A stretch of DNA of 64,000 nt, taken from the NCBI RefSeq assembly GCF_964204645.1, contig NC_134029.1, forward strand, positions 1,302,001 to 1,366,000. Reading direction: 5' to 3'. Made by a program: the position numbers and the translations under genes. Source of the stretch: Tubulanus polymorphus (taxonomy: Eukaryota > Animalia > Nemertea). Below are positions 19,101-46,500 of the stretch, piece after piece (within the stretch, counting starts at the first letter, position 1; every line of letters begins with the position of its first letter). Below the pieces are notes generated by a model. The model was not told the DNA's origin, ran no database searches, and saw only the letters and a program-made list of their open reading frames with translations.

Positions 19101-20789
19101 CCGTTCTATTTGAGAATTCCCGATGCGTCCCACGTGAAGATAGCGACTTCGGCTCATAAGGCTTTCGATTATATTCCAGCGCTGACGGAAACTACGAAGT
19201 GACGTTGATGACAAAAGCGACGCTGAATTCGGACGGTCGAGTGCAGTGGGATCCACCGGCTATTTATAAAAGTTCTTGTGCCATAAACGTCGAGTTTTTC
19301 CCGTTCGACGAACAGAAATGTAGAATGAAGTTCGGCTCGTGGTCGTACGACGGATTTCAGGTCGATCTAAAACATATACAACAGAAAAGCGGACCTCTAG
19401 ATGTGGAAGGCGAAGTTGTTATTCGAAACGGTGCCGATATGGGAGAATTTTACGAGAGTGTCGAATGGGACATTCTCGACGCTCCGGCAAAACGAAATAT
19501 CAAATATTATCCTTGTTGCGTAGAGCCTTATCCCGATATTACATTCAATGTTACTATGCGTAGAAAAACGCTATTCTACACGGTTAACCTGATCATACCC
19601 TGCGTATCCATCTCATTTTTGACGGTACTCGTATTTTATCTTCCGTCTGACAGTGGCGAGAAGATTACTTTGTGTATTTCAATTCTGATTGCGTTGACTG
19701 TGTTCTTCCTGTTGTTGGCCGAAATCATTCCGCCGACGTCGCTAGTCGTACCGTTGATAGGGAAGTATCTACTGTTCACGATGATATTGGTCACGTTGTC
19801 TATCATCGTGACTGTTATCGTGCTAAACGTACACTATCGGTCGCCATCGACGCACACGATGTCACCCTGGGTGCGCAAAGTGTTTCTGAACATTCTACCC
19901 CGGTTGCTGCTGATGCGGCGCCCGAATCCGGACAATGATAGCTACCCAAAAAATAAAACCCCAGTCGGAAACGGCATTGAAATGAAAGGGTCTTACAGAA
20001 ACATCATAAGCGGTAATGGAGGTATGAATTATGATTTAAACGCTCGTGCGAACCCGATCATGAGAATGCGCAGCGAAGAATATCTACGAGATCCAACCCT
20101 GCGACAGCGTCCTTTCTCTACTCGCATACAGAGGGCGCTTGACGGTGTAGACTTCGTGGCCGAACATTTACGTAATGACTGTGAGGAATCGCAGGTAAGC
20201 GATGTGGGTACGCGTTTTAGAAGTCTCCTGAACCCATTCTATGCAACTTGTAGAATTTCATTTTATTCTCATGGATCCAGTCCCATTGTCAGATGGTTTG
20301 ACTTTAAAGTTTGAAATATAGATGGAGTATTTCTAACTTTTTGATGATGAATAATATCAAAAGTATAATATAAAAATGTGAAAGAAATCCCTTTTCTGTT
20401 ACTTTACTAAAGACTTGTAGAAATGCATTTTATTCACCAGGGTCCAGTTCCACAGATCTGAGTTAAGATTTGACTCTGAGTTAACTCATTGAAAATGAAC
20501 TAATTTTAACTCAGAGTTAACTCTAACTCACAACTGTGGAACTTGATCCAGGATCCGACGAGATTACGTCCTCTGGTCGTTGAACACTTATAGATGAGCT
20601 AATTGCTAATTTCTTTAACGATGAATAAATGTTATTCATATTTAGATAAGAGAGGATTGGAAGTACGTAGCTACAGTAATGGATCGCTTGTTTCTGTGGA
20701 TCTTCACTACGGCTTGTTTGGTCGGTACGTTAGGTATCATCCTACAAGCACCGACATTATACGATAAACGGGTTCCAATACCGAGGTAA
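13134..20789 (+). CDS. Nicotinic acetylcholine receptor alpha subunit, paralog 1 (~512 aa)
   Basis: Exons 13134-13212 (signal-like [26 protein letters not shown]), 16554-16699, 17763-17807, 18438-18547, 19180-20194, 20646-20789; all GT-AG and in phase. Cys-loop [15 protein letters not shown], loop [10 protein letters not shown], loop B WSYDG, loop [10 protein letters not shown] (vicinal Cys = alpha type), GEK cation-filter motif, M1-M4. The first coding exon is less certain and a 7th exon is possible. Confidence 0.93.
20441..20548. mobile_element. Palindromic MITE family A (GGNCCAGTTCCACAG ... CTGTGGAACTNGNTCC)
   Basis: TIRs plus internal symmetry. Degenerate copies at ~4968-5082, ~12505-12577, ~14370-14468, ~24387-24500, ~31118, ~46565-46678, ~48144, ~58170-58193. 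Confidence 0.75.
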
Positions 20790-22348
20790 ACGTCGTTTCA
20801 TCTTTACAAATTACTGACACTAATCTCCGCGTGTTTCGGTGAAGGGATGAAGATGGTTTGCGGTGTCATTTTGATGTATCTGCAGAGCTTAGTTTTACAA
20901 TTCTAATCCTATCTACCATCGAAATACGAGAAACACGTGGATTATATTAGGATTAACTAACCTCTTTATATAAACTAATGGTAATGATTTATTAAATTTT
21001 GGTTTTGGTAATAACTGAACTCACATTATGATTATCACTGAATATTCCCGGGTTGTGGCTTTCCGAGATATCTAAACTAAAAAAAGATTGAGTTCATGTA
21101 CATTAGAAAAAAAACCCAGCTCTACAGGCTCATTTTGTTAGAATTAGTTTACTTCCAATGTTTTTACCCTAGAAACAAATTCTAACCGATAACTATGGAA
21201 CTGGGTTGAAGCGTACTGCAAGAAAATCTAATTCCAAATTTTGAAAAATGAATAATTTAGAATGCAATTATCCGTTAAGGAGTCTGAAATAGCTTAGCTT
21301 TCATTCGACTCTTTGAAAGATTGTGACACTCGCGTTGGTACCTTGTGACTGAGCTCTTTACAAATATTTCATAAAATCTTGCGCGCTCTCTCTCTCTCTC
21401 TCACTTACTGCGGTATATCAGATAAACAATTTCATATCGAGCAAGAGGGAGAGAGAGAGAGAGAGAGCGTATGATATGAGATGAATGTAAATATTGGTTC
21501 ATCTCGGCACTTAGTAACATATCACCACTTTCTCTAAGTCGTATATTGTATCAAGGATATCTAGGGATCGAGGGCAGCTGGTGGTAGCAGTAATTCTTTC
21601 ATTCTCTGTCTCTCCTTCAATCTCTGCGAAAATATATATATGAAAGCTTGATAATGATCTGTTTCGGGAAATGGGCTATTATTTAACCACGAACTTTCCT
21701 CCCTTACAGCATCCATTGAATGAATGATTAGAGATTATACTAACAGATTAACTCTATCACTACGTACATGGTAGGTTTATCTAACACAAACTGACGTTAG
21801 AAAGACTTAATACATATAACTATTTCTGTCCATTCTACACATGCTGTTCGGATGAAACAGAGTTTAAATGCGTTCATGATTCGATCCACACTTAGTTGTC
21901 GGTTTCCATTTCGGTGCCTGTAAATAAGAAATCAAATTTATCTGGAAATGTGTGGATATCGAGTAGAATCTGTTGTCACTTTCGTCACTATAAAATTTGT
22001 TTAGGAATATATGACATTTTCTGCTGAAATTTAGTAAAATTTCTTTCGTCTTAACAAAATGGTTTCGCTTTATTGAAAATAACACACGTCACGCCACTCT
22101 CTAACACCGCTTTTACTAACATACAATTATAACTACTACTATTTCAGAAAACTAACACATCATACAGATTAGCATGCTGCATGCGCGCACGCGCACTGGT
22201 CTAACGGGAACAATCCCTACTTCCGGTAATGGTGGTAAAGTGGTAAAGGTGTTATACGGCAGTAGAAATAGAACTTCGAGACTTCGGGATGAGATTCTAT
22301 TACGTAATGGCAAATTGTTGCTCGTTCTTTTCATCTGACTCTAAATGT

Positions 22349-22382
<34 letters not shown>

Positions 22383-22391
22383 ACAGCAGCA
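22349..22391. repeat. (CAG)n microsatellite
   Basis: Direct read. Other microsatellites: (AG)n ~16085-16128, (GCT)n ~52825-52846, (GCC)n ~55088-55107, (GCT)n ~60838-60868. Confidence 0.9.
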
Positions 22392-23496
22392 GAAAACGTC
22401 AGGATTATTCAGTTAACAGAGATTAACGTATTGTCTGCTGAAAATCAAAACACGTGTTTTTATAAACGCGTTAAAAATGTACATAAAAGTGTTAGTGTAA
22501 ATAATTAATGAATATATGAAGAACGCATTTCAACAGAGAACGAGACAGAATCCAGTTCTACAGTAGTTTGACTCATAGTTGGAGTCATAAATAGTTCATT
22601 GCCAATATTCCAACTCAGAAAAAAAGAGAAAAACAAGTCCGAAAAGGTTTCCTGATGCTTGATTTTTGACGCTTCGACTATATCATTAATAGTCGTCTTC
22701 GGGAATACTCTTTAACTGTGACTTTTCAAACTCGTTTTCTCTATGAGTTTGGAATTGTAAATTTCATTATCGTTTCAACACGGACTCGAGAATGTTTACT
22801 AAATTGTTTTAATCCTGTGCAACTGAATCCTGAATATTCGTTGTACCTTGAGTCGCACAGTTGTGAATTAAGTTCAAAAGTGGTCTTCAATCTTTAGACT
22901 GTTCGTAAGTTGTTAGATTGACTCATACTTGGATTGATCTTAAATCTACCGTAAGCGATGACTGTGCGACTAACCCTAACTTGCTGTAAACAGACGTGAT
23001 TTTAAAGATGGGACTTTTTAAAGAAATTATCAAAAGGACCCATTTATGTCTTTTTATAAGAACTATCTTTTTACTTTTCATATTCTGAAATCATTATGAT
23101 TGTTATCCTGCATCAATTGCTGATCTATTTCAATCAGCATCAAATTGTATAAATCAATTCAAAGTTGTTTTATTTCATATATTGTCTTTTGTTTCTTTTT
23201 ACGATTCGTTGCAGGGGCTCAACAAATGTAGAAAGTTGTTGTACACAAGTGGACTCCGAGGCGGGTGATTGATAGCTATGTCCAACCCCTCCAGCTATCT
23301 ATCAATTCATTATTTTGTCTCCTGTTACTTAAATGTCTTAAGTTCATTTTTTTCTCCGTCCACAACAAAGTTATTAGAATTTCGTTGTTTAAATCAAGCG
23401 AATTAAACTAAACGTGGGAACCCCGGTTGACAATGTTTAGAAATCCAATTCATTTACGTTAAGAGGTATTTGTGAGACGTCACGGCTTGTTATTCA

Positions 23497-23998
23497 GGGG
23501 CCGCAGTTGTTCAAACGTTGGTTGTTAAGCCTAGCGCACATCGACACTGCGATTGGAGACAACTAGTTGCTACCGAACGATTACCCCGCGCACATCGAAG
23601 TCTAGTTACAACCGGTCAGTTGCAGCAACTGCATGGCGCATGTCGATCGTCGAGATCCAGAGCGCGCACATCGACGGATATGACTGCGATTGAGTACAAC
23701 CAGTTGCTCAAAAGTAGAACATGGGCAACTGGCTGGAACTGGAGATAGATCGACGCTTACCAATCGTAAGCTCGCTCACATCGACACATTCAAGCAACTG
23801 ATCGTATCCAGCCAGTTGCTCTCATGCGCTGAAAACTGCCTTGCAACTAGTTGTCTCCAATCGCAGTGTCAATGTGCGCTAGGCTTTAGAGTTAACCAGT
23901 GGATAGTTGACATAATATAACAATTCTAAGTTCACTGTTACTGTGGTATTTATCTGTCGGTTATAATATTCAACCATCCTTTGAGCAACTGCAGCCCC
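23497..23998. mobile_element. Outer MITE interrupted by a second MITE
   Basis: TIRs GGGGCCGCAGTTGTTCAAA / TTTGAGCAACTGCAGCCCC. Confidence 0.7.
23528..23885. mobile_element. Nested MITE, ~43-bp TIRs, TTA target-site duplication (PIF/Harbinger-like)
   Basis: TTA|AGCCTAGCGCACATCGACACTGCGATTGGAGACAACTAGTTGC ... GCAACTAGTTGTCTCCAATCGCAGTGTCAATGTGCGCTAGGCT|TTA; internal GCACATCGA subrepeats. Confidence 0.88.
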
Positions 23999-26900
23999 TT
24001 GGCGGTCAAATGCAAGCGGCTAACTGTAGTACAATTGGCTACCTTTTGACGGTCAGTATGACGCGCGTGAACGATGCTTGTGACGTCACTGCACTGACTT
24101 TTGCCGCTATTTGTATAAAATTGTATATAATACATTGGTTAAAATGCAGAGTGTTTGTTTGTAAAATATTTGTGATCATTTAGAATAATTTGTCGCTATA
24201 TAAATTATATCATAAAATAAAGCAGAGATTTTACGTTAGTTTTCGTTGCTTTTTAAGTCATCACCCGAATAGTGACGACTGTGACAATATTGACTCTTAT
24301 CAGAATAGATCGCTGGATGAAGTGTCGTTCAGAATCCGACCTCGAGATGTCGCTTCATTTCCGAATGTCGGTGAATCGATGTAAGGAACCCGGTTCCACA
24401 GCAGTTCCACGGTTACAATATAGCTCAAATCAAAAGTTATGGATCATTAGTTCATTTGAAATGTTTGAATTTTTTACCGAGGAATGCGGAACTGGATCCA
24501 GTGATAGTTGTAGCTACTAAATAAAGCTTTATTCGCTATTGCATAGTCTAAGATTAAGCCTAAAATTGTATAGATGAAAACTAGACAAACAGATAAAGCT
24601 TTATTTATCGAGAGATATGACGTTCAAAATAGGCCCTAAGTTGTCTTCATGAAACCTGGAAAATCAATCCTCCATAATAGCAACTATATACAGATTGATT
24701 GCCAATAATAATTTGACTAACTGGATATTCAAAACGAAACAATGCTTCTTTTTTACTCATTTGAAATTTCTAATCATCACCACGGGGGGGGATTGAGCTA
24801 ACGTTGTTTTGTGAAAACATCCGCAGCTCTGTTGGCATCGTACAGTCTGACTCGCACATTAGTCACAAAACCAGGAACCAACAGAAAAAAGACATGTTTC
24901 TGTACGACACTAAACAACATAGTGTCAATAACAGGTGGGATCCATGGATCTAAAATAGTGGGAAAACTTCCTAAGGTCTGGTTTTATATTCATTTACATT
25001 GCGTTATATATATAAATATAGCGATTCTAAAACGAAATAACGAGCAATAAATTGTTAGCCGCAAAAACTGGGCTTTCCAGACCTATCCTAAATCCACCTC
25101 TGGATTGCGTCAAATATTTGCAAAACCTGAATTGTTTTTTGTTTCATCTTTTTGTGCGTCAGTGCGCGGCATCCGGCTTTACATATATACAACGTCATTA
25201 TTAGATCTACGGCTGCACGCATGACAGAGGGTGTTCACAGTGGCTTCCGTGATGGTGTCACCAAAATAAACCACTCTCTTCGATTCGATGTCAAACGGGA
25301 AACTATCAGCATCAGCCGAGGAGCTGACAGAGACAGTGTGACTGTGAATAGCGCGAAGCGTCTGAGATTTTAATAAATCCAGTGGACTTTTCTAACTGCA
25401 TAGAGCAGTTGGTTCATAATCAATCGAATCATCTAGCAATGTGTGATTGCATCGGTTTGATTTAAAGACAGTAATGTTTACTATTAGACCCGGTTGTATC
25501 GTGGTGCTCAGTATTACGGTGCAGTGGCGCGAACCAGCAGACGACCGACTACATCCTCGAGGTCTGATGACAACGGATGGATTTATTTAAATACCCAACA
25601 CTCTGTACTGAAAACCGTAAGTATTTATCGAACTAGAACGTTATTCAAGCAGAATGAAAATACCTGATGATTATGAATATGGTTTGTTTAGTCATCGAAT
25701 TCCTAAAATGCTATTTCAACTCTGCTATATCTCGTCTTTACCTGTTTATGTATTTGCTCTTGGTCAACTAAACTATACAGGAACGTCGATGGTGCCATAA
25801 TGTGCGCAAGGTTTTTTCTCAAACTATTGGTGGTGTTTTTTTACATTGTTTGGTGGTCACTCACTTATAAATACTACAAATAATACTGATCTTTCGGACC
25901 TATAGACTTAAACGATTTTTTGAATATTTGAAAATCTGACTTACAACATTTGCTCATACATTTTTGTACCATACGTGCGGTAGTCTCGCGGTCATCTCCG
26001 GCGTCAAAGTATTGTTAGATCAACAAATTTCGAAGCAAAAATTGCCACATTCTCCGGACGAAGATAAAAACAAGATTTCTGAGCTTTCTCAGAATTTCGT
26101 CACAAGAATTTTTTTCTTTTTGAAAAGATTTGTCGATCGTGAAAATGTATTTGATCCTTTGAATACCTGTTTAGCATTGAAAAACATGGAGACGATCTTT
26201 GATATCGAAGTTGACGATACATTACGTAAGTTCAACGAGGCGATTCACCCGTACAGTTTCAATTCACATCAATTCGTTTTGAGGCAAAGATTGAATACGG
26301 AAAATGAATTCACCGCTCGGGAAACATAGCGACATCATTTCTTCATGAAAATTCCCCAGGGCTGAAATTGAATTCCAATGAAATGAACACTAATAACGCA
26401 TTTGCACATGCAGCCATCCATCATAGTGAAATTCTACTAAAATAAATGCGTTAAGTAGCGGAAAATAAACCAGTCAATATTATTGAAGATGCGTTGAAAT
26501 GAGAAGTGTTTTCACAACCATTTTTTCATGTGAGATAGATACATGTCGTGTTTTATACGGGAACTGTACGAATAATTAACTCAAGCACCTCACAACGTAG
26601 TTCAGTTTTTCTATATTTTAATGATTTTGTAACCATATATTCCTCATCGGTTACTGCAGCACCTTCCTTTTTATGGTCCATCGTATTACGCAGTTACGTT
26701 TTGGTTTTTATTTTTTTCGAACCCGATTTTCTTCGAGAACTACAGCTGAATAGCTTCCACGATTGTGAGCTTGAATATAGAGCCGCTAGAGGTAATAGAT
26801 TGAAAATGAACTAATTTAACTATGCGGACATAACGAAAAAATGTGAAACTGGATCCTGATATTGAAAGATATTTGCGATAAAGTTAAAGAGTTTGATAAT

Positions 26901-27456: not shown

Positions 27457-27772
27457 ACAAAGGGAGAGGGTAGAGAGGAGAGGGAGAGGGAGAGGGGAGA
27501 GGGGAGAGGGGAAGGGAGAGGGGAGAGTGGAGAGGGAGAGGGTAGAGAGGAGAGGGAGAGGGGAGAGGGGAAGGGAGAGGGGAGAGGGGAGAGTGGAGAG
27601 GGGAGAGCGGAGAGGGGAGAGGGGAGAGCGGAAAGGGGAGGGAAGAGCGGAGAGGGGAGGGAAGAGCGGAGAGGGGAGAGGGGAGAGGGGAGAGTGGAGA
27701 GTGGAGAGGGGAGAGTGGAGAGTGAAGAGGGGAAAGTGGAGAGGGGGAGGGGAAAGGGAAGAGCGGAGAGGA
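27457..27772. repeat. Polypurine (GGAGAGG-like) low-complexity tract
   Basis: ~315 nt almost purely G/A on +; accounts for the spurious Pro/Ser/Leu and Arg/Gly/Glu ORFs. Confidence 0.92.
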
Positions 27773-28126
27773 TACTTGAAACATATAGTTAGAATATGAT
27801 GATGATTGGTTTCCGTTCAAATGAATTTTTCATACGCACAAACCGAGTTGAATTAAATCAACAATCGTGATATCTGATTCCTATATTCCATCATTTAAAC
27901 AAGCGCATGCATTTTTTAGAGTTTCACGTGATGCGAGGTGAAATTTGCAGAGATACAGAAATTATCGGCTCCATTTGCGATGAATATAGAACAATTAGCG
28001 CTCATATAGTTCTATGCTATGAACTCATTGAGGTGGGAATCTAACACAATCAGACAGCCAGTCAACACACCTGACTGGTCACCGCGCTGACCATGGGACA
28101 GACTAACTTACAAACTGTCGCTATAC

Positions 28127-29138: not shown

Positions 29139-29445
29139 CCAGTTTCACAGTTCAGGACTCAGTTCCACAGTTCAGGACTCAGTTCCACAGTTCAGGACCC
29201 AGTTCCACAGTTCATGACTCAGTTCCACAGTTCATGACTCAGTTCCACAGTTCAGTACCCAGTTCCACAGTTCATGACTCAGTTCCACAGTTCAGGACTC
29301 AGTTCCGCAGTTCAGGACTCAGTTCCACAGTTCAGGACTCAGTTCCACAGTTCAGGACTCAGTTCCACAGTTCAGGACCCAGTTTCGCAGTTCAGGACTC
29401 AGTTCCACAGTTCAGGACTCAGTTCCACAGTTCAGGATCCAGTTC
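29139..29445. repeat. 20-bp minisatellite (~15 copies) derived from the MITE-A terminus
   Basis: Unit AGTTCCACAGTTCAGGACTC contains the MITE-A left end; the array trails into a degenerate MITE body to ~29560. Confidence 0.9.
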
Positions 29446-30486
29446 TGTTGTTCACCAACACCACTACTGCAGTTCTGGACCCAGTTCAACAATTCTGGAC
29501 CCTGTTCCACAGTTCCCGGTCAAGATTTGACTCTAAGACTAGAAATTGGACATGAACTTCTTAAGTCAAACCTAGTCCGGCAACTTTGAGTCGACAGAGA
29601 ATAAGCCTACTGACACCGCCCCCCTGCTCCCGCCTCCCCCAGCTCCCTCTCCCCTGCTCCCGCCTCCCCGTAGCTCAGGAACTGTGTCATGATGCTTAGA
29701 GTTTGCATACACACACACTCAGAGCTCAGAGCTGGTGACATTTCATGATTTCGTGATCAACCGAAATTTCTTCTCACGTTGAAAACTATTGTCTTTGATG
29801 GATTTCTCTTGCTTCACCGACATTACCGCAACAACACACGCGTCTCATTAAACAATTATTCACCGCTAAAATTCATCCGTTAACGAATAGAAAATAGAAA
29901 CAGCCATCGGGAAATACACCGTTAACAACCACATACAACCGACATTTCGCGTAACGATTTTAATTTGAAACTCTTATAAAACAGAACCCTTTGAAACTGT
30001 GGAATTCCCAGTTAATTTTCACTCTAATTATTATTATCTGATGTGGTTTGATAACGAAGATAAATATGCACCTTATGATCTACCATACATCTGCAGTCAG
30101 GAGTGCTCCAACAATATCATAACCCTTCTAAGCCCAAACAGTCAAGCAGTGCCTTTTTCAAAATACAAAATCTGAAACAGTTATGTAACCTGCGTGTATT
30201 GTAGAATTAAGAATAGAATAGTATTATGAGGAAGAAATCTAGAATCTGAATTGATAATGGTTAATTTCTGGCACCGGTCGTGACAAACGGTGCCTCGGAA
30301 GAGAAGTGACATTTCGATTTGATAATGTGAGCCATTTTCAAAACTGATTTGTTATAAAACGTCGAAACATTTTTCTCTTATTCAGTCTTCATAATTGTGA
30401 TTTTTTGAAGTCATTTGTTTTAAGAAGTCGATGATGGTTTGTGTTTTGCTGATTTCTAAATCTATTTCAGGTGAATTCAATTCGCA

Positions 30487-33400
30487 ATGATTGTCGTTCA
30501 AGTCGCTGTCGTCGCTTTATCGTTTGTGTTCGTCTTAAAAAGTAAGTAATGAGCCGAAAGAAACGAAACAAAAAAAAAAATTTCGACATATCTCACATCA
30601 AAGAAACGGCGGAAAATTTCATCAGATTGTTTACAGAATGTCTGTTCGTGGATTCTTTAATCACTAGTTTCGGAAAAGCTTCAGAATTCGTCTTTTCAAA
30701 CTTTAAGGGATTGGTCGGAAAAACTTTCCTTACTGAAAAAAAAATCACTCGATATTATTTTTTTTGCGAAAAATATGCGATGAATAATAATATCGTAATA
30801 GCGTATATCGGGAAAATATCAGATACCAAATGACCAATTCCCATAAAACTAGTGAAACAACTGAAGATAATAGTGGATATTGATTGGAGGTCTAGGATGG
30901 TAAATTACAGAACGCCGAGGCAAGTTTGTGAGAACTTAACCAGCTGTAGTCTTACTGTAGCTACTGACGTCTCCTTGTGATTCACAGTTACAGGTTACAT
31001 TAGCGCTGACAGGACCCGATACACTAAACAGTTTAGGGATTGAATTCGCTACTCGACTCACTTGATCTCTGCCTACAATTTAGCTAATCATTTACACAGA
31101 TCTCAAGAAACTTTTCCGGACCCGGTTCCACAGAGTTCAGAGTGAAATGAAACCTGCGCGACTGTGGAACTGGATCAAAGTTTAACCCACACAACTGTGG
31201 AACTGGATCAAAGTTTAACCCACACAACTGTGGAACTGGATCAAAGTTTAACCCACACAACTGTGGAACTGGATCAAAGTTTAACCCACACAACTGTGGA
31301 ACTGGATCAAAGTTTAACCCACACAACTGTTGAACTGGGTCCAGAGTCAAATTTAACCACAAAACCGTTAAAATGGTTTCAGGGACAGATTAGACCCACA
31401 CAACAACTGTGGAACTAGATTCAGAGTTAATTCTAACCCGCATTCAACTGTTGAACTGTGAGGTTTTGAATACTGATGGCGCAGGACAAGAGAGGAACTC
31501 TTAGTAATCTAAAGTCAATATCCCTATGATTCGATGCAGTAGTTTATGATTGAATCGAACCTGAATTTGAATGTTTTGAAATTATTTAGTGGTTCTATTC
31601 ATTAGTTCCGCAGTGACATTCATCGCTATAGAAATTGTCGATTTGCGCCGAAGAGATTGATTAAATAATTCTCGTAGGAATCGAGAAGCTGAAACTTTTG
31701 TCCAATCCATCACTGGTTTCTACTGTATGAGATATTCCTCTGAGTCCTACTTACACCGAGTTCAACTACACCTAAAATAAGAGAGATTTACAAGATGATT
31801 TACGAATTCTGGACCCGCACTGTGGCAAAGTCGCAAGTCTTCCTAAGACCAAAATAGGAGCCAAGTATGATGGTAATGATATAATAACGAATGTATTTTG
31901 TCGATGATAAAGACATTTACAGTGTTTCATATGAATTGTTTTGCGATATAGTGTAATAATGGAATAACAGGAGACCCAGCAATACGCGAGTCCGATCCCT
32001 CTTACAGATCCGCACAAGGAATGGAAAACGACGCCAGTTGAGCCGAGTGAGTTAGTCACACGCGTTACAGATATCATATAGAATTGATATTAGAATCGGT
32101 TGATTAGTTGAGAACTATGCGTTGCGGCTGAGCCTCGATAAACAGCTAATTACAAAACTGTCTGCAGGGCTGTTTACAGGTTCAGGGGTCATTCGTCAGC
32201 TTATATCGACACCTACACATACATCACATTCTATACGTGACGAGTTTACGATTTCTATACAGGAAACAATTATGAAATGATGATAGACGAATTCCCGGAG
32301 GTGAAGAGACATTAATTAATCATTTATAAACTCATTTCACTCGCCGTGTGGAATTATTAACAAAACTCTCTCCTCACCCATCGTCTTATGTAAGTGATCA
32401 AAATTTAATCAACCCCCAGCAGGAAACCTGGCTGTAAGGAGATATGACGTCATCGCCTTGTGAATGAATGAAAGGAAACGAGTAGTTTTCACTCGCTATG
32501 AACAGCGCTGAGGAGTTTGTAACATTATTTATGAGGTTTTATCAATAAGAAGCGGGAATTCTATTCATACGATATCAATTATCAATATCAATTAGATACA
32601 TATTAACAATCTGCATTAGATTTCCGCTTCCTCGGTTTACATTCAAATATATATTGACTGAAGAAGGGATGTTTATTTCTCAATGAATAAATACTGAAAT
32701 GATAAGCATGATTTTAACACATAAAACGTAGAAGATAATATAAGTTATTAAGGGTTAAGTCTAGAGACTGGTTCCAATTTAACATTGATAAAAACACTCG
32801 TGAGTCCGTGCTGAACGATAATATCAAATCAGAGTCCGAGATGTTTCCTAAAGCCAGTAGTTCATTCAACGTTTCGACAATATCATAACAATCATCTTCA
32901 GTAATACTGTCCTGATCTGAGTCTGATACTCGTGGTCTAAATGATAACCCACAACTACCGATCAAATGATATATCTTATTCATACACGGTTTATTTCACG
33001 CGCTGCTTCTTTTCCCCGTTTTTTTTGCAGGTAGTCTTTGTAATCCTGACGCTAAAAGACTTTACGATGACCTGATGAAGAAAAGCGGATACAACAAACT
33101 GATCAGACCGGTCGGCAATAATTCAGATAAACTGACTGTTTATCTAACGATGAAGTTATCGCAGCTTATCGATATCGTAAGTCTAAAATATGTGTTCAAA
33201 AAACTGATTCCATCAATAAGTAAGAAATAAGTAAGAAACGGTTTTAAGAATCGTTCCCTGTCACTGTACGCCGTGCGCCGTTTAGGTTTCTTAAGTAAAT
33301 AGTCACTTGAGCATTGAAGTCAAACCCAAAATTCAGGAAAAGACTATCGGAGTTCATTCAAGGTTTCGACCGAAAATACCACGAGCCATTTCAAAATATT

Positions 33401-36400: not shown

Positions 36401-39400
36401 TAGTATAAGACCGGTTTTAAGACTGGTTGTGGTAAAACTGGTTCTAATTTCCTGGTTGTACGATTCGTTAGAGTATCTCGGGCCCGGGTTAAGCATTATT
36501 ATGATGAATCAATGTTGTGTATATTCGGTTCGTTGAAGGCAATCGATTCGCTGTCGAGTGGATAAAGTTTACTCTATTCGATAAGCACTGCTAACTGTTT
36601 GATCAAGCGTGAAAATCCTCGAGTTGAGTTGATTACAAACTCTAGAATTCTTAAACTGATCTCCCAAATAGCCCTCCATCAACCACAACAGCGCCGTAAA
36701 AACAAATCCAATCCCCAAATTGATATCGTAATGATGCTAATATTGAATAATGAAACTATGAAACGCAATGAAGTAATGTATATACAAGTGTTGTTATAGC
36801 AAATTAGCTATTTGGAGTTGTATCTGCTTTGAGATGCTGTTGTTTTCTACGAAAACTAACGTAAAAACTAACTTACATTTTCTTGATTATTCAGGACGAG
36901 AAAAATCAAATAATGACGACAAACGTTTGGCTGCAGCAGGTAAAATATAAATGCTGACGAATGAATGAATGGATCTTCCCGAATTGTTTCGATGATATTC
37001 GCAATATATGAGATAATTGGCTGCGCACACATCAGTCAGGGGGATGAGAAGGATAATAGAAAAGAGGAATGACAAGAAAGAAACGAACAAAAAAAGGAGC
37101 AACAGTTTATAAGAAAAATAGCAAAAAATATAAACATGCATGAGTGTGTATGTGGTGATGAAATGGCGATGTTGAATGGAAAACACTCTATGTATTTTCA
37201 ATTGATATTATCATTGATGCGGTCAATACCCGACCATTCACATCCCAGACCCTCATCTCTCAGACCAAGATAAACACTCATAGAACCGCATAGAACATAC
37301 ATTCATTTGTGGCATCAAGAGATTTATTTGATTTCGGTTCTGTGAAAGCATCTCTTTAGACATAACGTCTCCTCTCGCGAGATTTCATCCAATGTCGCGA
37401 GAACTCGGGTAAACATCTTCCGTATAGACGACAAATATCAGTTATCAGTTTGATGCATTTCGACATGTTTCAGTAATTATTTCCACTACTCGGCTTTAGT
37501 TTACTGAAGATCGTAGAATAGCCGCGCTCGGGCCTGGTAAATAGATGATCTAAAGTCACCATATAAGGCACCAATTAAACAGCCAGCTGGCTAGTACTGG
37601 GTCCTTCATAACCATATCGAGCACTTTGAATTGTATGTACGGGTTATGACTGTGTAACTGTTACTGAAAAATAGGCATACTTTACTATATATAATCAAAA
37701 GGTTGACAAACTAAGTTTATTAGAAATTGAAAATTAGAATTCAAAAATACACAACGCCTCGGACTCACAATGAAGACTATCGGTCGCACCTCAGGGTCAC
37801 CTGACGACGGTTTTTGTTGGGGTGAATGCGAGGCTTTTGCAGAGCTTTGGTTATGTTACTGGGGGGTAGAAATAGGCCATTCTGCATCTGAAGAAAAGAT
37901 TACTAGAATTTCTGGGTCGAGGTGTCCTGCTTGATTCGGAATACGGGCTATTCTAAAATGAAAATAATCATTTCCAGAACGAACAAAGTTTTTCTGACGA
38001 TGAAAGATTATCATCATCGGTGTAGAAAGATTCTGCCGCTTGTTCTGCGCGAATCCGGAACAGAAATAATTGGAGACCAGTTTATCGGAAATCAATGGCA
38101 AAACACAATCGGTATAAGTGGCGGCAGCGTATGTCATCCCGAGAACTTGTTCCGACTCTCCTCTCTTCATCGCACCGCAAACTCTTCATCACAACTAAAG
38201 ACGGAATAAAATTATCATAAATCGTATCGATTCATCGACGTATTTGCCAATTTGATTTACCGAAAGCGGTATTGAGACTAATGAAGACGTTATGGGCCTC
38301 GGGGGTGAATTTAACATGATGAAACTTATTCGCTCTCAAAGAGATAACAACATGAGTCTCCAAACTCGACGCTCTTTCAATTCTCTCCTAATATTCTTCG
38401 GGATATACGAGCGTCGTCATGGGGCGGATGAGCGCCGGGGCCGTGACCTACTAGCCTTTGAAGAGTATCGATAAATTCCTGAGTCCCATGTGTGACACAC
38501 GCCGAGGACAGTTGGTGGGAGCAGCCAAATCACTGATCCCAGTTTCTCAAAACGGTTTTCGCCCTAATTTATAATTTCTTCGTTAACTCACTATATCTGG
38601 AATCGATTTTAAGGGAAATCTTCTTTGTGCAACTAGGCCAGGTTGCCTTTCACTACGTCCATTAGTCTAAGGGATATTCAACTGAAAGCTTGTATATATA
38701 AGCATATTTCATGAAGGTTTTTTTTTCTCGAAGAAATGGTTAATCTATGATGTGCGTAACTATGTATGTTCTATTTTGTTTCAGGAATGGATGGATTATA
38801 AATTGAAATGGGACCCGGTTGAATACGGAGATGTAACAGAGTTATACGTTCCCTCAGAAGAGATCTGGTTACCTGATATCGTGCTCTATAATAAGTAAGC
38901 CGAGACGATCATTAGTTATGATAACTCAGCGCTCGATCTATGATGAATTATTTAACGTAGAACGAAGACATTCTTTTTACAGTTTGTTATCAGTATCAGT
39001 ATACTTACAATGAACATTTCTAGTTTGTACAAGTATTTGACTCATATGTGATTCTTATTTCAATTAAGCGAAATGAATTCCCCCCTTGTTTCTAAATCAT
39101 GCATAGAGACAATTCAGCACTTATGTTGTCAACTAGATTCTGAAGTAATTAAATGGTATTTTGCTCGTTAACTTCTGCGCTAGTGCCAGGACCTTCCTCA
39201 CATGGTTCTTATTTCAATGAAGCGAACTTCCCCTTACTTTCTAAATCGTGTAGAGAAAATGCAGCACGTCTTTACCGCTGATAAGTTGTTGATAATGAAA
39301 TGGTGAACGTCGGTTGTTGACATTTTAACGTATGTTGTAAATTCCAGCGCTGATGGAAACTACGAAGTGACGTTGATGACGAAGGCAACGTTGAACAGTA

Positions 39401-40874
39401 ACGGTCTCGTGGAGTGGATGCCACCGGCTATATACAAGAGTTCGTGCACGATCAACGTCGAATTCTTCCCGTTCGATCAACAGTTGTGTACGATGAAATT
39501 CGGTTCGTGGACCTACGACGGATTTCAGGTCGATTTAAAACACGCCGAACAGAACGAGAAAGAGGAAGGCGAAGTGATCATCGGGAACGGCACGAATATG
39601 GAGGAATTTTACGAGAGTGTCGAATGGGACATTCTCGACGCTCCGGCAAAACGAAATATCAAATATTATCCTTGTTGCGTCGAGCCTTATCCCGATATTA
39701 CATTCAATGTTACTATGCGTAGAAAAACGTTATTCTACACGGTTAACCTGATCATACCCTGCGTGGCCATCTCGTTTTTGACGGTACTTGTATTTTACTT
39801 GCCATCGAATAGCGGCGAGAAGATTGCCCTGTGTATATCTATTCTGATTTCATTGACTGTGTTCTTCCTGTTGTTGGCCGAAATCATTCCGCCGACGTCA
39901 CTAGTCGTACCGTTGATAGGGAAGTATCTACTGTTCACGATGATATTGGTCACGTTGTCTATCATCGTGACTGTCGTCGTGCTAAACGTACACTATCGGT
40001 CGCCGTCGACGCACACGATGTCACCCTGGGTGCGCAAAGTGTTTCTGAACATACTTCCCAGGTTGCTGTTGATGCAGAGACCTACACCAGACAAGGACGA
40101 TGATTTGGACTTCACGACCACGGCTGAAGAGAATAAAAACGCCCGCGGTATTAGTTTCCGAGCTCGTAGTAATTTTGTGTATGTCAGTACAGATGATTTG
40201 ATGGCTGATCCTGACAACCCGACAGGTATACGACCAATACACATCTCAACGCAAGTTCAAAGAGCGTTAGAAGGCGTTAGATTCATAACGGACCATCGTA
40301 AAAATGAGGACCGGGAGGAACAGGTTTGTCTAACACTCCAGAAGGCCGTGTTGTCTTCTTCGCACATCTCTCTTGTCAATCCAGGTTCCATGGGTTCGAA
40401 TTCTAGTGATGATAGCAAAGGATTTTTCATGCCTTAAAGGCAAAAGAAACTTCGATCCTGCTAAAACCTGTTCTGACTGGCATCGTTAACATTAATACGA
40501 AATCTCAGAAAATCTTACCAGAAATAATTTTCCAACCTCAACATCTCGATGAGGGATCATTCATTAATTACGTACGCATAAAATTTGAATTTTTCAACCC
40601 CCCTCCCCCTCTGTACGTAAAATCGGCCATTTTTTTCGTATACATTAAGCATTACAGTACGCAATCATCGTGCCTCCCTTAATGCGTACGTAATAAATGA
40701 ATGACCCCTGATTTGTTTAATTTATTTCAGGCAAGAGAAGACTGGAAATACGTAGCTATGATTCTCGATCGACTGTTTTTGTGGATATTCACGACCGCCT
40801 GTGTTGTCGGTACACTTGGTATAATTATACAGGCCCCGATGCTTTACGATGACCGGGAACCGATACGCAGGTAA
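30487..40874 (+). CDS. Nicotinic acetylcholine receptor alpha subunit, paralog 2 (~491 aa)
   Basis: Exons 30487-30541 (signal-like [18 protein letters not shown]; exon begins 30471), 33031-33176, 36895-36939, 38785-38894, 39348-40323, 40731-40874. Same 146/45/110-nt exon sizes as paralog 1. Cys-loop [28 protein letters not shown]4 exon [18 protein letters not shown]. Possible terminal exon 41293-41332; AATAAA at ~41598. Confidence 0.93.
31161..31340. repeat. 33-bp minisatellite (~5.4 copies) derived from the opposite MITE-A terminus
   Basis: Unit ACTGTGGAACTGGATCAAAGTTTAACCCACACA. Confidence 0.9.
32863..32906 (-). ncRNA. Degenerate hammerhead copy (same family as 5671)
   Basis: CUGAAGA...GAAACGUU core kept but stems mismatched. 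Similar decayed copies at ~22665-22708, ~34585-34645, ~50940-51020, ~51535-51635, ~56180-56220, ~62565-62642. Confidence 0.5.
35449..35586. mobile_element. Palindromic MITE family B (GGNCCAGTTGCA TIR, TTAAGAC subrepeats)
   Basis: TIRs GGGCCAGTTGCA / TGCAACTGGGCC. Related copies at ~22850-22975, ~48240-48370, ~53715-53830, ~55500-55620, ~63130-63210. Confidence 0.75.
40553..40708. mobile_element. MITE (same family as 6349-6507) with TGA target-site duplication
   Basis: TGA|GGGATCATTCATTAATTACGTACGCA ... TGCGTACGTAATAAATGAATGACCCC|TGA. Confidence 0.85.
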
Positions 40875-41084
40875 TGTATCGTCTATCATAGAGCTCAGGA
40901 CGCCGTGTTCCGCGGTTGTGAGTTCAGTTTTTACTCTGGCATTCACAATAAATTTAACAGATTCAAATAGAACTATAACCACACTCAAACGTGGTGAACG
41001 GATAATAAGATAAAATCCCACTATTTACAGATTAAAAGAATTTAAAAACAAGAATTTATTTATTAAATCTAAATTATATAAAAG

Positions 41085-41126
41085 ACACGACGTTTCGATC
41101 TCACCCTAGAGATCATCGTCAGGTGT
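41085..41126 (-). ncRNA. Minimal type I hammerhead ribozyme (second family, GUC cleavage triplet)
   Basis: ACAC-CUGACGA-U-GAUCUC(UAGGGU)GAGAUC-GAAACGUC-GUGU: intact core, perfect stems I and II. Confidence 0.88.
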
Positions 41127-43568
41127 GGGATTTTATCTTATTACCTGATTCAAAACTCCCAGTCAGGTTTTGACCCACAACTGAAAACCCGGGCCCTGTA
41201 ATGCTATCGCTTTCAATCGTTTAAACTAAAGCCCTAGGTATTGACATCTTTGAATATATTGGAAAGTATTATCATGTACAATGTATTTTCAGTAAAATTG
41301 GATACCTGACTGAATACACGTGCGACGAGTAAAACACGCAATCATAGACGAAACGATGGTCGTATTGAAATACTGAAAGTGTTGTTATATATTTTATAAA
41401 AGTATGATTGTTCAGCGAAACGACAAAATTGAATTGATATCATGTTTCGATAACGTGTCATGTAGAATATTGAACGCTAATTGTTGCCATTGTAAAAAGA
41501 GAATATATTTGTCTTACACATGTTTTATTGCTATGAATTATTGTCTATTCATTTGTTCATGAAAATTTATCAAATTCTGCTTGTGTTTTTGTATATAAAT
41601 AAACATGTATGAATACAGTTTATGTCATCCGATTCTTGCGTCTTGATTCAAATTCAATCCTCCGCTGCCAGGGTCTGTGTCATTTGTGTCTCACTGAGGA
41701 GTGTTCTCCGTATTCTGGACAAGTGTTTGCGATGCCGACTAATGGGAGATATGCAGTAGCTGTCAAAGGTTTTATCGCCATTGACGAAATTTATTCAGCA
41801 TAATTTGCCCCAATTGTTTTTTTAATCTTCTGAAAGAGTTTTTTGACCCTGTTGCACTGCCCCAATCCAACCGAATCAACTATATTGTTTAGCACTTGTC
41901 GGGTGGATAAAGTTTTCGACTCACAACCGATGATGGGTTCCCCAACTCACTAGTCGTGTGGGAGACTTACTCCGATCGAAGAAGTTTCAATAGTATCGAA
42001 TAAAAGGATTTGGTTTACGAAAACGAAACTCGATTTTTTAACTTAAACAAATTAGATTTTCGGTTAAAAGTAAGATGGCGGACTACGACTGCTCAATTGT
42101 TTCTGAATGGGATTTACATTTCAAAAATGCACCGCCATCTTAGTTGAGTCGGTGCGCCCTAGCAACCGCTGTTCAAACCGTTTATCGGTTTACTCTAAAC
42201 TGAAACTCGTCTCCTCAGTTCGTCCTCGAATATCTCGACAAGGCGCCGACACGAATACAGACTAATACACAACAAAAGTCAAGATTAGGAAAAATACGAA
42301 ATAATTTTACTAAACTTCATCCATAATTTATTTTTACTTATAACAAAACGTTTTCTTGCCCGTTTCTCGTCGACCACAAAGTTTAATCTATATGAAACAC
42401 GTTATTTACACGCTATACAATCATCAGATATCAATATCGACAATAGTTCAATATTACACGTAAATTCAACGAAACCAGATCCAGTAAAATCTCTGTGTTT
42501 GTATATTCTACGATTGTACATTAATTAAACAACCGTATTTAACTTGAAAACAACAACAACAACAGATCGAAACACGAGAACAGAATTCAAATATGTGTAA
42601 AGATTCCTCTTACGGGAAACATTGCGAAATTTCTCCGCTGAAGACTATATTACGTCGTACTTACATTATCCTTATTAATTACCTGAATTAATGGATTCTG
42701 ACACTTTAAAATGGAATATCGTTGAGATAGATTCTTCAACGAAAGAGACCCTCGATTATAACCTACTCGAGGTGGTGATAGCGAGCGATAGTTTTCTCCC
42801 TTAGACCAGTTACACACTAGTTATAACTCCTTACATTATTCAGTGTTTAACATCAATACTATCATGAATTCCACAGTATTTCAATAAGACTCGACCATTG
42901 AACTAGCAATATTCCTATTCTTGTTGTGCATATGAGAGGCTTTGGAAAATATCACATTTTATTTTGTTTGCTGTCGTTGAGATGTCTGGTCCACCGTCTT
43001 CACAGAAACCGATCTGACTCTCCGATTAGAGCGTACTTTCCACTGGAATTGAACACAGAAAACATTACGGGTTGAGTTTAAATAATTCATGATTCTTAAT
43101 TCTAAGAAATCCCCTTCTCAAAGAATATTCGTGATAGCCCTCCTGACTCATAAATCTCGTCTCAAAATATGATGCTCTGTAATGTTTTTAAGTATACTTT
43201 GTTTAGATTAATCTTATTATATAGATTCTTGTATTGTAAAGTGAAGCCCTCGAATACCAGACTATGCTTCAAATACTCAATTGGTGAACTCAGGAAATTA
43301 GATATTTTCCGTGATACACTTATATTGTGTATGTCTTCACAACTTTATCAGAAATAGTATCGAATCGAGCAGGAAACGACAGAATTGGATTAATAATGAT
43401 AGATAGGTAGAAGTAGAAACAAATCAAGGAGACAAATTGAGAACAGTGGTTTACAAGGCGGTATTGGCCAAATTTGCAAATAATCTATGAGGTATTTTGT
43501 ACTCAATGAAGGCATCTAGTTAATTTGTCGATTGCGAAATGAGAGTGTTTTGTGCGATTGCGACTGTC

Positions 43569-46500
43569 TCAGAAAACACAGACCAGAAGTAAAAACTGAT
43601 CTGATATTTGATATTTGTACCTGGGTATAGGAACTCGATCGTCGTATAAAGTCGGGGCTTGTAGTATGATACCCATAGTTCCGACGACACAAGCTGTAGT
43701 AAATATCCATAAGAACAATCGATCGAGCACCATCGCAACGTACTTCCAGTCTTCTTTTATCTAAAATAAATCCGATCTCTAAAATCATTCTAAACCACAT
43801 AGAAATGTGAGACGATCGCCCAATCAAAACCAGTCACGGTGACCAGATACGCCTCCACTGTGAGGTTATTTGGTAGGCGCACATTTTGGGACATTTGTAC
43901 CCATCACGTGGAATCCCCTCCCAAACCCCAACCCTAATCCCAGCAGCATTCAAAGGAGATCTCAAAACTGTTTTTTTAAGTTATAACCCGTTTCTGACAA
44001 CAGTTCTACTAATTTACAAGGCGATATACGAAAGCATAAGCCTTATTCTATCCGACCCAGACCCCACGTGTCTAAAATGCGTATCCAAAAAATTATACCA
44101 CTGACATCATGAGTATTGTGCACGCATGCGCTTGGTGCAGTGACGCTTTACTAAAGCTGAAAATGAATTCATTACAAGGAAAATGATTCAATATGTTATG
44201 AGGCAAAATGCTTCGTAAAACTCTAGTGAAAAATAAAATTCATGTTTAGTTTTAATGCAATATGAAGTAATTGGTTTTGATTGTTATGAACAAACCTGTG
44301 ATTCGTCATCTTCGTTCTTCAGATGATCAGCTACAAAGCGAACACCATCAACTGCCCTCTGTACCGAGCTAGAATACGGTCTCTGTCGCAGTCCCGGGTT
44401 CTCGGGATCGTGACCCAGTAGATCTTCACTGCTTCTCATTCTAAACGCGCTGTGCGAGTCGTAGTTTATTCCACCCGATGCTGATTTACTGTTATCGCCG
44501 TACGACTCACGAATCTCTACCCCGTTACAGGTGCGAACCATGACCTTCGGTGACTTGTCCTTCTCTGTATTCGGGCGTCGCATGAGCAGTAACCGGGGTA
44601 GAATGTTCAGAAACACTTTGCGCACCCAGGGTGACATCGTGTGCGTCGACGGCGATCTAAAGTGTACGTTTAGCACGACGACAGTCACGATAATAGACAA
44701 CGTGACCAATATCATCGTGAACAGTAGATACTTCCCTATCAACGGTACGACTAGTGACGTCGGCGGAATGATTTCAGCCAACAACAGGAAGAACACAGTC
44801 AGTGAAAGCAGAATGGAAATACACAAAGTAATCTTCTCGCCACTGTCAGACGGAAGATAAAATACGAGTACCGTCAAAAACGAGATGGCCACGCAGGGTA
44901 TGATCAGGTTAACCGTGTAGAATAAGGTCATTCTTCTCATTGTGATGTTGAATGTAATGTCCGGATAGGGTTCTTTACAGCACGGGTAATACTTTTCATT
45001 ACGTTTCGCCGGAGCGTCGAGAACGTCCCACTCGACGCTACGATAAAACTCTTCCATATCGATTCCATCGCTGATCACTACATTTCCCTTCTGGTCGTCT
45101 CGACCGATCTGTTTTTTATGCTTCAAATCGACCTGAAATCCGTCGTACGTCCACGAACCAAACTTCATGGCGCATTTCTGTTCGTCGAAAGGGAAAAACT
45201 CGACGTTTATCGTGCACGAACTCTTATAAATAGCCGGAGGTACCCATTCTACCGTTCCGTCCATGTTTAACGTAGCTTTAGTCATCAACGTCACTTCGTA
45301 GTTTCCATCAGCGCTGAAAATATGACGAACATCGGTCCGGTTTGAGACGGTGGCCGGGAACAGCAGGTCACGTGTTGATGTGTCTGATTAGACAAATATA
45401 ACACATGCAAGATGGTAGAGATTATTGAGGGGGGAACTTTTAAACGACATTTAGTGATGTATCGTGTAGGGTTTAAATATCGCCGTGTCATAGTTATGAT
45501 TGTATTATCAAAATGAAGCAACATGGTTCTGTGCTTTAAGGGGGTAGGGTAGGGTCGGGAGAGGGTTGGATTTCATTTATTTAGGCATCAATTTTTTCTC
45601 TTAATATACATTTCATCTAGACATATTTATGGCTCGCAGTTTAAGCGATCATGAATTGAGGTAATGTTTACCATCACACATGAAATCTTTTGGCAAAAAT
45701 CATCATCAAAATTTGGTAATTGATGCTCAGTAAGCCGAGATAGGTAAACATAGTATTTGAATTCTTGATAACTAGTGCGTTGTATTGTTATTTTGTTATA
45801 GAGCGGTATGAAATTAGTAGTAGTTAGATAGATATTAGTAAAACAAACCACACGAGGTAGTTAAGATTGATTAAGGTGCATTTACATTCAGAGATTAGAC
45901 AGATATGGGGGGGGGGGGTGGGATGAGTGTTGCATGCTTATGAAAGGTCATACTGGAACCGCCGAGAACTAGAATATAATCTCAATTGTATCTACTAAGA
46001 TATTTGCCTGAAATTTGCCTGATGGAATTTGTTTGATAATCGGAATATCTTTGATATATGCTCTTAATTTTGAAGTTTTTTGATTTATTCGTTTCATCTA
46101 GGATTTTGAAGGTTTTGGTAAGTGGGCCTAGGTAAAGGTAGGTCACAAACATTGTAGTGATAGAGAAAGTGATGTCCATAAATGGGATATTCACACAAGG
46201 AGAGACGTCGGATGAAGGATGCGATCAGTGGAATTAGACACCATGCAGTAGCGTCCTCTATCGGGCAGTAAAACGGAAATTACGTATGTCTACTTCCACT
46301 CTGCTTTCACAGTTATAGCGATCTCGAGAGAGAAAGGGTTAACACTGAAATTGAGAATTCGCGGTTAGCGACAGCAGTGCGCCTATTGAATATAGTGTGT
46401 TACTAAATAGAAAGATTATAACATTAGGCAATATATGATATTTCAAACAGTTTGAAAGTGAGTTAAAATAGATACGGATAAATAATTCGAAAAATTTGTG

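Follow-up and report, generated by a model that had tools for sequence, protein, structure and literature searches.

In the primate red/green (L/M) opsins, frequent interlocus conversion is described together with a peak of divergence that selection maintains at the spectral-tuning sites (Teshima & Innan 2008, reviewed in PMC3924837). Non-allelic gene conversion is also described among the voltage-gated sodium channel paralogs of Taricha newts (Gendreau et al. 2021, PMC8476164; cited in PMC9543476), and the tandem paralogues of HMA4 in Arabidopsis halleri are presented as a case of mosaic divergence by interlocus gene conversion (bioRxiv 10.1101/2025.10.29.685298). Among lophotrochozoans, nicotinic receptor (nAChR) genes lie in tandem arrays, in families that are intron-poor, retroposed and massively expanded (Jiao et al. 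2019, PMC6896357); the text of that study contains none of the terms 'gene conversion', 'conversion', 'concerted' or 'nemertea', and in the literature we found no report of conversion among invertebrate nAChR paralogs. The nemertean locus described here very probably records repeated short interlocus conversion among three old genes, with one divergent block, which we call the P2 island, representing sequence left uncovered by recent tracts.

Three nAChR genes and their divergence

The window analysed, a stretch of 64,000 nt of Tubulanus polymorphus DNA, contains three alpha-type nAChR genes, P1 (+), P2 (+) and P3 (-). P1 and P2 lie head-to-tail, 20 kb apart. P3, in the opposite orientation, is tail-to-tail with P2, and these two form inverted repeats 5 kb apart. 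Exon 5, delimited in each gene by its open reading frame and Pfam matches, spans 19181..20194 (+) in P1, where it is in frame and covers the end of the ligand-binding domain, loop C, M1-M3 and most of the cytoplasmic loop, 39349..40323 (+) in P2 and 44296..45312 (-) in P3. All three exon-5 translations match PF02931 (E 1e-36 to 1e-37) and PF02932 (E 1e-60 to 1e-63), with both the Neur_chan_LBD and the Neur_chan_memb domain present in every copy. P1 exon 5 is a 100% match to the RefSeq-derived T. polymorphus protein P0001, P2 matches P0004, and P3 corresponds to P0002 (exon-5 residues identical by eye; exon 4 alone 100% in filtered tblastn).

The Cys-loop (C-x13-C), the vicinal cysteines of loop C (YxCC; YYPCC) and the M2 -1' Glu (GEK) are found in P1, P2 and P3, while Leu at 9' is found in P3 only, with Ile in P1 and P2 and Leu in all four outgroup genes. 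The three are old, intact nicotinic receptor genes of alpha type, forming an intron-rich trio within the conserved 'alpha-like 1 / insect alpha-beta2-like' core group. P3 is the copy nearest the orthologs of other species: its exon 5 is 80% identical to a Lineus-like ortholog, vs about 71% for P1 and P2, a comparison in which the near-identical Lineus-like metagenome contig L009 takes the place of Lineus longissimus genomic DNA for protein P0003. Among the best 120 matches in a protein search, the nearest from outside Tubulanus are P3-like (e.g. Lineus longissimus, 72%), and no other species contributes an ortholog of the P1 or P2 type.

The paralogs were compared one exon at a time. In exons 2, 4 and 6, 20-34% of sites differ among P1, P2 and P3, and in the 45-nt exon 3, 13-24%. 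Exon 4 (P1 18438..18547, +; P2 about 38786-38895; P3 about 47079-47188, -) provides an unconverted background, with 22-33% nucleotide differences between paralogs (28/110 nt for P1 vs P2), as does exon 6 with M4 (P1 20646..20785, +; P2 about 40728-40868; P3 about 43620-43760, -), with 23-28%. Even within exon 5, silent-site divergence outside the tracts described below is 0.66-0.69 upstream and 0.84-0.86 in the cytoplasmic loop, and a self-BLAST of the window finds no similarity between the introns of the three genes. Given near-saturated silent sites outside the tracts and unalignable introns, the duplications are old. A DNA search of the species' own genome returned P1, P2 and P3 and no fourth close copy.

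A mosaic of identity within exon 5

For about 470 bp of exon 5, from loop C to just past M3, the partner of identity switches along the exon, from P1=P2 to P2=P3 and then to P1=P3, so that adjacent segments are incongruent. In the first tract, which begins ahead of loop C and ends where M1 starts, P1 (19445..19605, +) and P2 (39604..39764, +) differ at 2/161 nt, namely at 19522/39681 and 19571/39730, with a pS of 0.04, vs 0.88-0.90 to P3. P2 (39730..39788, +) and P3 (44867..44925, -) are identical across a tract in M1 that includes 19 whole codons (39730-39786 vs 44925-44869; 0/57 nt). P1 (19616..19680, +) and P3 (44816..44880, -) are in turn identical over 21 codons comprising the end of M1, the M1-M2 linker and M2 from -4' to 5', with 13 consecutive informative sites; their differences resume at codons 6' and 9'-11'. 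From M2 12' to past M3 all three copies are alike over 219 nt (P1 19697..19915, +; P2 39856..40074, +; P3 44581..44799, -), with a paralog pS of 0.12-0.15 and 95-96% identity.

The P2 island (39787..39855, +) departs from P3 at 16 sites across 23 codons, the first at 39789 and the last at 39853, and is followed by 65 codons with 5 differing sites. It encodes N at -4' (39808-39810), A at 2' (39826-39828) and I at 9' (39847-39849); the residues of P1/P2/P3 are D/N/D at -4', T/A/T at 2', I/I/L at 9' and A/S/S at 10'. The possibility of an external donor for the island was considered and rejected, as the search of the species' own genome found nothing besides P1, P2 and P3, with the island 81% identical to its counterparts in P1 and P3. 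The difference counts of an earlier sequence-only reading of this DNA (28/110, 2/161, 19 identical codons, 16 in 23, 5 in 65) were all reproduced, its P1=P3 identity over 17 codons gained four more identical codons upstream, and its assignment of pore residues to the three paralogs was correct.

When the 305 polymorphic sites of exon 5 were permuted and runs of matching sites scored, the P1=P2 run (20 sites) gave p<5e-5 and the P1=P3 run (13 sites) p=1.5e-4; the P2=P3 tract, with 4 informative sites, gave p=0.09 and is not significant alone. Within tracts pS is 0-0.15, vs 0.66-0.9 in the unconverted flanking sequence, and in trees built segment by segment the branches are 10-20 times shorter in tracts. 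Nucleotide-level constraint (codon bias, RNA structure, editing sites) could in principle produce low silent divergence with no exchange, the protein being extremely conserved across the stretch and P3 showing mild pS dips (0.36-0.6) around M2 against the Lineus-like ortholog. However, tract codons compared with four other-species orthologs or relatives (including the Lineus-like gene, L008 and L010) have a pS of 0.65-1.1 with a pN of about 0.02, codons of the three-way zone have a pS of 0.65-0.85 against other species, and the tandem nAChR pair of another organism (L008), likewise at 0.65-1.1 in the same codons, has no matching drop in silent divergence. Because the same codons are silent-saturated between species, constraint fails to account for the identity, and it cannot yield identity that switches from one pair of genes to the next; we consider it extremely improbable. 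The sequence-only reading had set equally low dS between distant species, a mark of constraint, against its own proposal of conversion; we looked for this and found saturated silent sites instead. No signal of GC-biased conversion was seen, GC3 in the P1=P2 tract (0.36-0.38) not being raised and that of the three-way zone (0.63-0.68) being at the same level in other species.

Short tracts located in paralogs are also where reads mis-mapped at the consensus step could create false identity, and the RefSeq models, derived from the same assembly, provide no independent support. We therefore turned to reference-free Logan k-mer contigs built from raw reads, which cover exon 5 of P2 and P3. Their depth is about 27 in unique sequence, 54.5, or twice that, in the P1=P2 tract (contig 39604-39720, P2 side) and 79.7, or three times that, in the three-way zone (contig 39854-39962, P2), so that doubled and tripled depth fall exactly on the two-copy and three-copy tracts. 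The junctions recur in the contigs with 0 differences, and the contigs break exactly 30 nt from paralog-specific sites: 44896-45310 has its start 30 nt (k-1) away from the first site specific to P3, and 41099-44620 stops 30 nt beyond the last such site. Contig 39759-39852, unique to P2, crosses the island with 0 differences. A second individual, sequenced with Illumina in a separate study, covers the stretch and keeps the mosaic; its depth is higher over the shared tracts, and its only difference in the P2 island among those listed is at 39789. A putative RNA run, the single one of its kind, gave no coverage of the three genes. Since the depth steps of one, two and three times match the tracts and the second individual keeps the mosaic, the pattern is not an assembly artefact, a reading to which we give next to no probability; assembly collapse, the other objection that the sequence-only reading had raised, thus fails. 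Isolated paralog differences at 39789, 39963 and 44776 (probably 39681 and 39730 too) vary between read sets, which places exchange, or its sorting, on the time scale of allelic variation, although P1 reads pile onto P2 in the shared tracts, where allele calls are ambiguous.

Rearrangement of another kind, namely reciprocal unequal crossing-over, inversion between copies or recent partial re-duplication of a segment of the exon, is very unlikely. Since P2 and P3 are inverted repeats 5 kb apart, any crossing-over between them would swap their 3' parts, but reciprocal exchange reshuffles sequence and creates no identity, and both flanks of each 50-160-bp tract are at background divergence in both partners, with gene order and introns undisturbed. 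The proposal of interlocus conversion is strongly supported by run permutation, between-species silent saturation and read k-mer depth taken together, and the identity of the tracts is best identified as interlocus gene conversion, an ordinary process in a new place.

The history that we propose, and hold to be highly probable, would consist of repeated, short (about 50-200 bp), non-reciprocal exchanges that overwrote parts of the roughly 470-bp stretch, acting also between inverted copies (P3 with P1 and P2). At least three very recent events, P1-P2, P2-P3 and P1-P3, would have left the tracts that differ by 0-1.2%, and older or patchy events the three-way likeness from M2 12' to past M3; direction and number of events lie beyond the resolution of three sequences with saturated outgroups. 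Confinement to this stretch of exon 5 is likely to reflect protein constraint on loop C and M1-M3, which would keep the DNA similar; similarity would favour heteroduplex formation, and this further similarity, in a process that feeds itself. The block at 39787-39855 would then be sequence that the recent tracts missed in P2. Selection may help to hold this block and other micro-patches in place, but is not required.

Selection and the pore residues

The sequence-only reading went further, proposing that conversion homogenises the membrane scaffold while selection blocks tracts that would erase paralog-specific pore residues. The restriction to a membrane scaffold does not hold, as the P1=P2 tract also covers loop C of the ligand site. 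Shielding of pore residues fares in a mixed way: replacements do cluster in unconverted patches, and yet the P1=P3 tract spans the same codons. In its full form, conversion would be accompanied by purifying or diversifying selection that removes tracts erasing paralog-specific pore residues, giving the 'peaks of divergence' of Teshima and Innan, a combination to which we assign somewhat less than an even chance. The pore residues concerned would, on the same tentative footing, be N-4' and A2' of P2, I9' of P1 and P2 vs L9' of P3, and A10' of P1; to these could be added, with equal reserve, a Ser of P1 in M1 and the I/V and Y/F differences in M3. Positions -4', 2' and 9' are classic conductance and gate positions in M2 of the Torpedo and muscle nAChR.

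Several observations point towards selection. Each of the seven amino-acid differences in the homogenised zone (columns 131-237) has, at most 2 codons away, a silent difference that follows the same paralog pattern (7/7; p=5e-5), and this association persists when they are counted as 5 clusters (p=2-6e-4). A replacement is present in every one of the five internal multi-site patches, though this stretch of protein is almost invariant across phyla, and the replaced states are derived relative to the Lineus-like and other orthologs. Three isolated silent differences are unfixed, being absent from another individual, and the rest of the P2 island has no fixed difference among those listed for the second individual. 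However, unconverted remnants would hold silent and replacement differences together with or without selection, and the definition of patches is post hoc, the replacements themselves helping to make a patch 'multi-site'. With a pS of 0.87 and a pN of 0.076, the P2 island has a pN/pS of about 0.09, with no excess of replacements; divergence reaches the full background level abruptly at its edges instead of building to a graded peak; and the prior chance of its location on M2 is roughly 0.3. The P1=P3 tract (0/51) crosses the pore codons from -4' to 5', and these codons are therefore convertible and not intrinsically protected. The island is equally well explained as a gap between short tracts, or as a P1-P3 patch laid over a stretch earlier homogenised between P1 and P2.

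It is possible that selection shields pore residues from conversion, and the further notion of a 'co-evolving subunit set with tuned pores' is speculation. A stronger version, which we regard as unlikely, is that frequent conversion has eroded three co-expressed subunits to codon-sized islands, each held by selection on one functional residue; with the same doubt, these residues would be the -4' ring, the 2' constriction, the Leu/Ile of the 9' gate, 10', one site in M1 and two in M3. If this were true, the remaining islands would amount to a natural map of the residues by which the subunits differ in function, among them an Ile tolerated at a 9' gate that is otherwise nearly invariant. More generally, if selection holds the micro-islands, they would give a short list of residues for subunit-specific pore properties (-4', 2', 9' with Ile at the gate, and 10'); if it does not, the locus would represent ordinary concerted evolution, limited by sequence similarity.

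Comparison with known systems

The nemertean locus offers a clean, read-checked example of short-tract interlocus conversion between old paralogs. Such tracts can mislead nAChR subunit phylogenies that rely on the conserved M1-M3 block, and the ages of paralogs can come out too low. In contrast to the intron-poor, retroposed families of Jiao et al., the trio is intron-rich. With HMA4, as that system is outlined in the preprint, it shares three tandem copies and a mosaic of converted and diverged segments, but the HMA4 triplication, in a plant, is young and under positive selection for dosage, whereas the nAChR genes are old. As described for Taricha, conversion between ion-channel paralogs moves pore-region codons, as it does here; in the newts it spreads toxin-resistance substitutions against a known selective background, while the claim made for the nAChR trio is the opposite, that pore residues are shielded. 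The opsins, as summarised in the review, are alike in having neighbouring paralogs, short tracts and a small divergent block with functionally important residue differences. In the opsins, however, the whole gene is homogenised, introns included, and the peak has support from both orthologs and population data, whereas in the nAChR trio conversion touches about 470 bp of one exon in otherwise saturated genes, and the block, known from sequence comparison, is sharp-edged, with one pair of genes converted across it.

Three alpha-type nAChR genes

Self-BLAST and six-frame translation of the window, taken from within a genome of 268 Mb, found three nAChR genes, which were compared exon by exon, by reference. 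P1, on the forward strand, has exons at 13134-13211, 16555-16699, 17763-17807, 18438-18547, 19181-20194 (in frame) and 20646-20785; P2, also forward, has its exon 5 at 39349-40323; and P3, on the reverse strand, has its exon 5 at 45312-44296, with upstream exons reaching ~60.3 kb. The P1 exon-5 translation is 100% identical to P0001, a protein of the palaeonemertean Tubulanus polymorphus, while P2 is matched by P0004 and P3 corresponds to P0002. LBD and TM Pfam domains were found in all three genes and, since each carries the Cys-loop, YYPCC in loop C and, at the mouth of M2, GEK, all three encode alpha-type subunits. The tail of the RefSeq-derived P1 protein, KLTHHTD, is not coded directly past exon 6 (20786 onward), where the frame runs into a stop following IPR. 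Either an alternative end or one more putative small exon on the 3' side is implied; the tails of P2 and P3 likewise differ.

P3 is 80% identical to the gene of a Lineus-like nemertean (P1 and P2, ~71%), and is alone among the three in having Leu at 9'; it is the conservative copy, with P1 and P2 the faster-evolving ones. No orthologs of P1 or P2 were present among the matches listed in a protein search. Because the three genes group together in trees even in unconverted sequence, the duplications are probably specific to this lineage.

The 18-kb spacer between P1 and P2 contains three tandem-repeat arrays (27459-27771, 29139-29515 and 31161-31458), and GC skew is strong and of opposite sign at 26-30 kb. 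P2 exon 6 is flanked by two dispersed, very high-copy repeats (40549-40712 and 40967-41127; a related copy lies at 6349-6510), with summed contig depths of ~76,000 and ~185,000 in read run X1 and several hundred reads in run X5. The first, ~164 bp long with 34-nt terminal inverted repeats of 88% complementarity, is MITE-like.

Near-identical tracts in exon 5 and in raw reads

Every difference count of the sequence-only reading was reproduced when exon 5 of the three genes was aligned by codon. P1 and P2 differ at 28 of 110 nt in exon 4 but at only 2 of 161 nt between 19445-19605 and 39604-39764. P2 and P3 share 19 identical codons (0/57 nt), followed by 23 codons with 16 differences (39787-39855, the P2 island) and 65 codons with 5, and P1 and P3 show no difference at 19616-19680 / 44880-44816, with differences resuming at the 6' and 9'-11' codons. 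As background, the paralogs differ by 20-34% (exons 2, 4 and 6) and by 13-24% (exon 3, 45 nt), and self-BLAST detected no similarity among their introns. When the 305 polymorphic exon-5 sites were permuted, the P1=P2 run (p<5e-5) and the P1=P3 run (p=1.5e-4) both exceeded chance; the P2=P3 tract, with only 4 informative sites, is not significant alone. At the M2 9' gate, P1 (19688-19690) and P2 (39847-39849) have Ile (ATT); P3 has Leu there, as do all four outgroup genes. The 10' residue of P1 is Ala by a two-base codon difference (GCG vs TCA), with identity on both sides.

Such tracts could be products of assembly or polishing collapse. Four read runs were aligned over 39340-45320 (5981 letters), the stretch with exon 5 of P2 and P3, and the depth evidence comes from k-mer contigs. 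In X1, reference-free k-mer contigs had depths of 24.6-31.3 for single-copy pieces, 54.5 for the piece at 39604-39720 (P1=P2 tract) and 79.7 for that at 39854-39962 (three-way zone); contigs end at 39633, 39759, 44620 and 44896, in each case exactly 30 nt (k-1) off the nearest paralog-specific site, and a P2-unique contig (39759-39852) spans the junction of the P3-like tract with the P2 island with 0 differences. The depth steps and contig ends therefore show the tracts to be present in two and in three copies among the unassembled reads, and the artefact was not borne out.

X5, an Illumina run from a different sample and study, also spans the stretch, with elevated depth over the shared tracts. 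Its sole difference within the P2 island among the variants listed (the best-supported, with 71 more besides) is 39789 (T>C, 10/10 reads); it also reads C>T at 39963 (22/22 reads) and A>G at 44776 (14/14 reads), the last likewise in run X2. All three positions (codon columns 150, 208 and 180) belong to the isolated silent differences between paralogs. Both P1/P2 differences of the 161-nt tract, 39681 and 39730, vary between read sets; P1 reads pile onto P2 there, so their alleles were left unassigned. On these observations exchange, or the sorting of exchange products, appears to be as young as allelic variation. In non-coding sequence of 39340-45320, X5 differs from the assembly about once per 100 bp, reflecting either high diversity or a divergent population with the same species label.

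Silent sites point to interlocus conversion

The M1-M3 protein is almost invariant across the Lineus-like gene (L009), two tandem L008 genes and the relative L010, so that amino-acid identity is no proof of conversion and silent sites are decisive. By Nei-Gojobori proportions, paralog pS, at 0.66-0.69 in upstream exon 5 and at 0.84-0.86 in the cytoplasmic loop, falls to 0.04 for P1-P2 from loop C to M1, 0.00 for P2-P3 in M1, 0.00 for P1-P3 from the end of M1 to M2 5', and 0.12-0.15 for all pairs from M2 12' to past M3. Between Tubulanus genes and those of other species the very same codons give pS of 0.65-1.1 with pN ~0.02, and branches of the tract segment trees are 10-20 times shorter. The drop in sliding windows is confined to the Tubulanus paralogs, being absent between species and in the L008 pair. 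Constraint, which should have left silent divergence equally low between species, was rejected as the cause of identity: interspecies silent sites are saturated, and the identical pair switches along the exon, beyond what constraint can do.

L008 is a 462-kb ENA assembly contig with tandem nAChR genes of the same subfamily at 10187-11209 and 17314-18357, 6 kb apart. Their silent sites are saturated all through M1-M3, hence no conversion in this pair; the Ala that P2 has at 2' also occurs in one of these two genes.

The observation is thus real and interlocus conversion well supported: repeated short non-reciprocal transfers have occurred among three copies, including the inverted one, limited to ~470 bp of exon 5. 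Protein constraint probably holds the DNA of this stretch alike enough for heteroduplex formation, so that conversion would be self-reinforcing there and fail elsewhere; small remnants would be left by patchy repair or independent tract ends.

Pore residues and known systems

The sequence-only reading further proposed that selection, on top of conversion, removes tracts that would erase paralog-specific pore residues, which we consider possible but rather doubtful. The P1=P3 tract (0/51 nt) covers -4' to 5', showing that pore codons can be converted, and the P1=P2 tract spans loop C with shared derived residues of the ligand-site region, so conversion is not limited to the membrane scaffold. 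The P2 island (pS 0.87, pN 0.076) has no replacement excess and sharp edges without a graded peak, and a 20-codon gap would have a prior probability of ~0.3 of overlapping the pore codons of M2. A neutral history fits as well, in which a stretch once alike in P1 and P2 was later overwritten from -4' to 5', in one of the two, by a P1-P3 patch; P1 and P2 still have in common ATT at 9' and flanking silent states, and no other donor for the island was found in the genome.

In favour of the proposal, replacements co-cluster with silent differences: all seven amino-acid differences in columns 131-237 lie within 2 codons of a silent difference of the same paralog pattern (p=5e-5; with the differences merged into five clusters, p=2-6e-4). 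A replacement occurs in each of the five internal multi-site patches, at a position otherwise invariant in outgroups. Also in its favour, three of the isolated silent differences are not fixed, whereas the rest of the island shows no fixed difference among the X5 variants listed. However, remnants would carry silent and replacement differences side by side whether selection acts or not, and the patches were defined post hoc; a selective contribution to the islands is possible rather than probable.

Tandem nAChR arrays are known in lophotrochozoans (PMC6896357), in the main paper on which neither 'conversion' nor 'nemertea' occurs, and literature searches for conversion among invertebrate nAChR paralogs found no report. 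The established Teshima-Innan signature is a peak of divergence between two genes that exchange sequence by conversion; primate red/green opsins (PMC3924837) are its type case. For ion channels, conversion of pore codons between paralogs is known from newt sodium channels (PMC8476164, cited in PMC9543476), and the P1=P3 tract of the nAChR trio likewise lies on pore codons.
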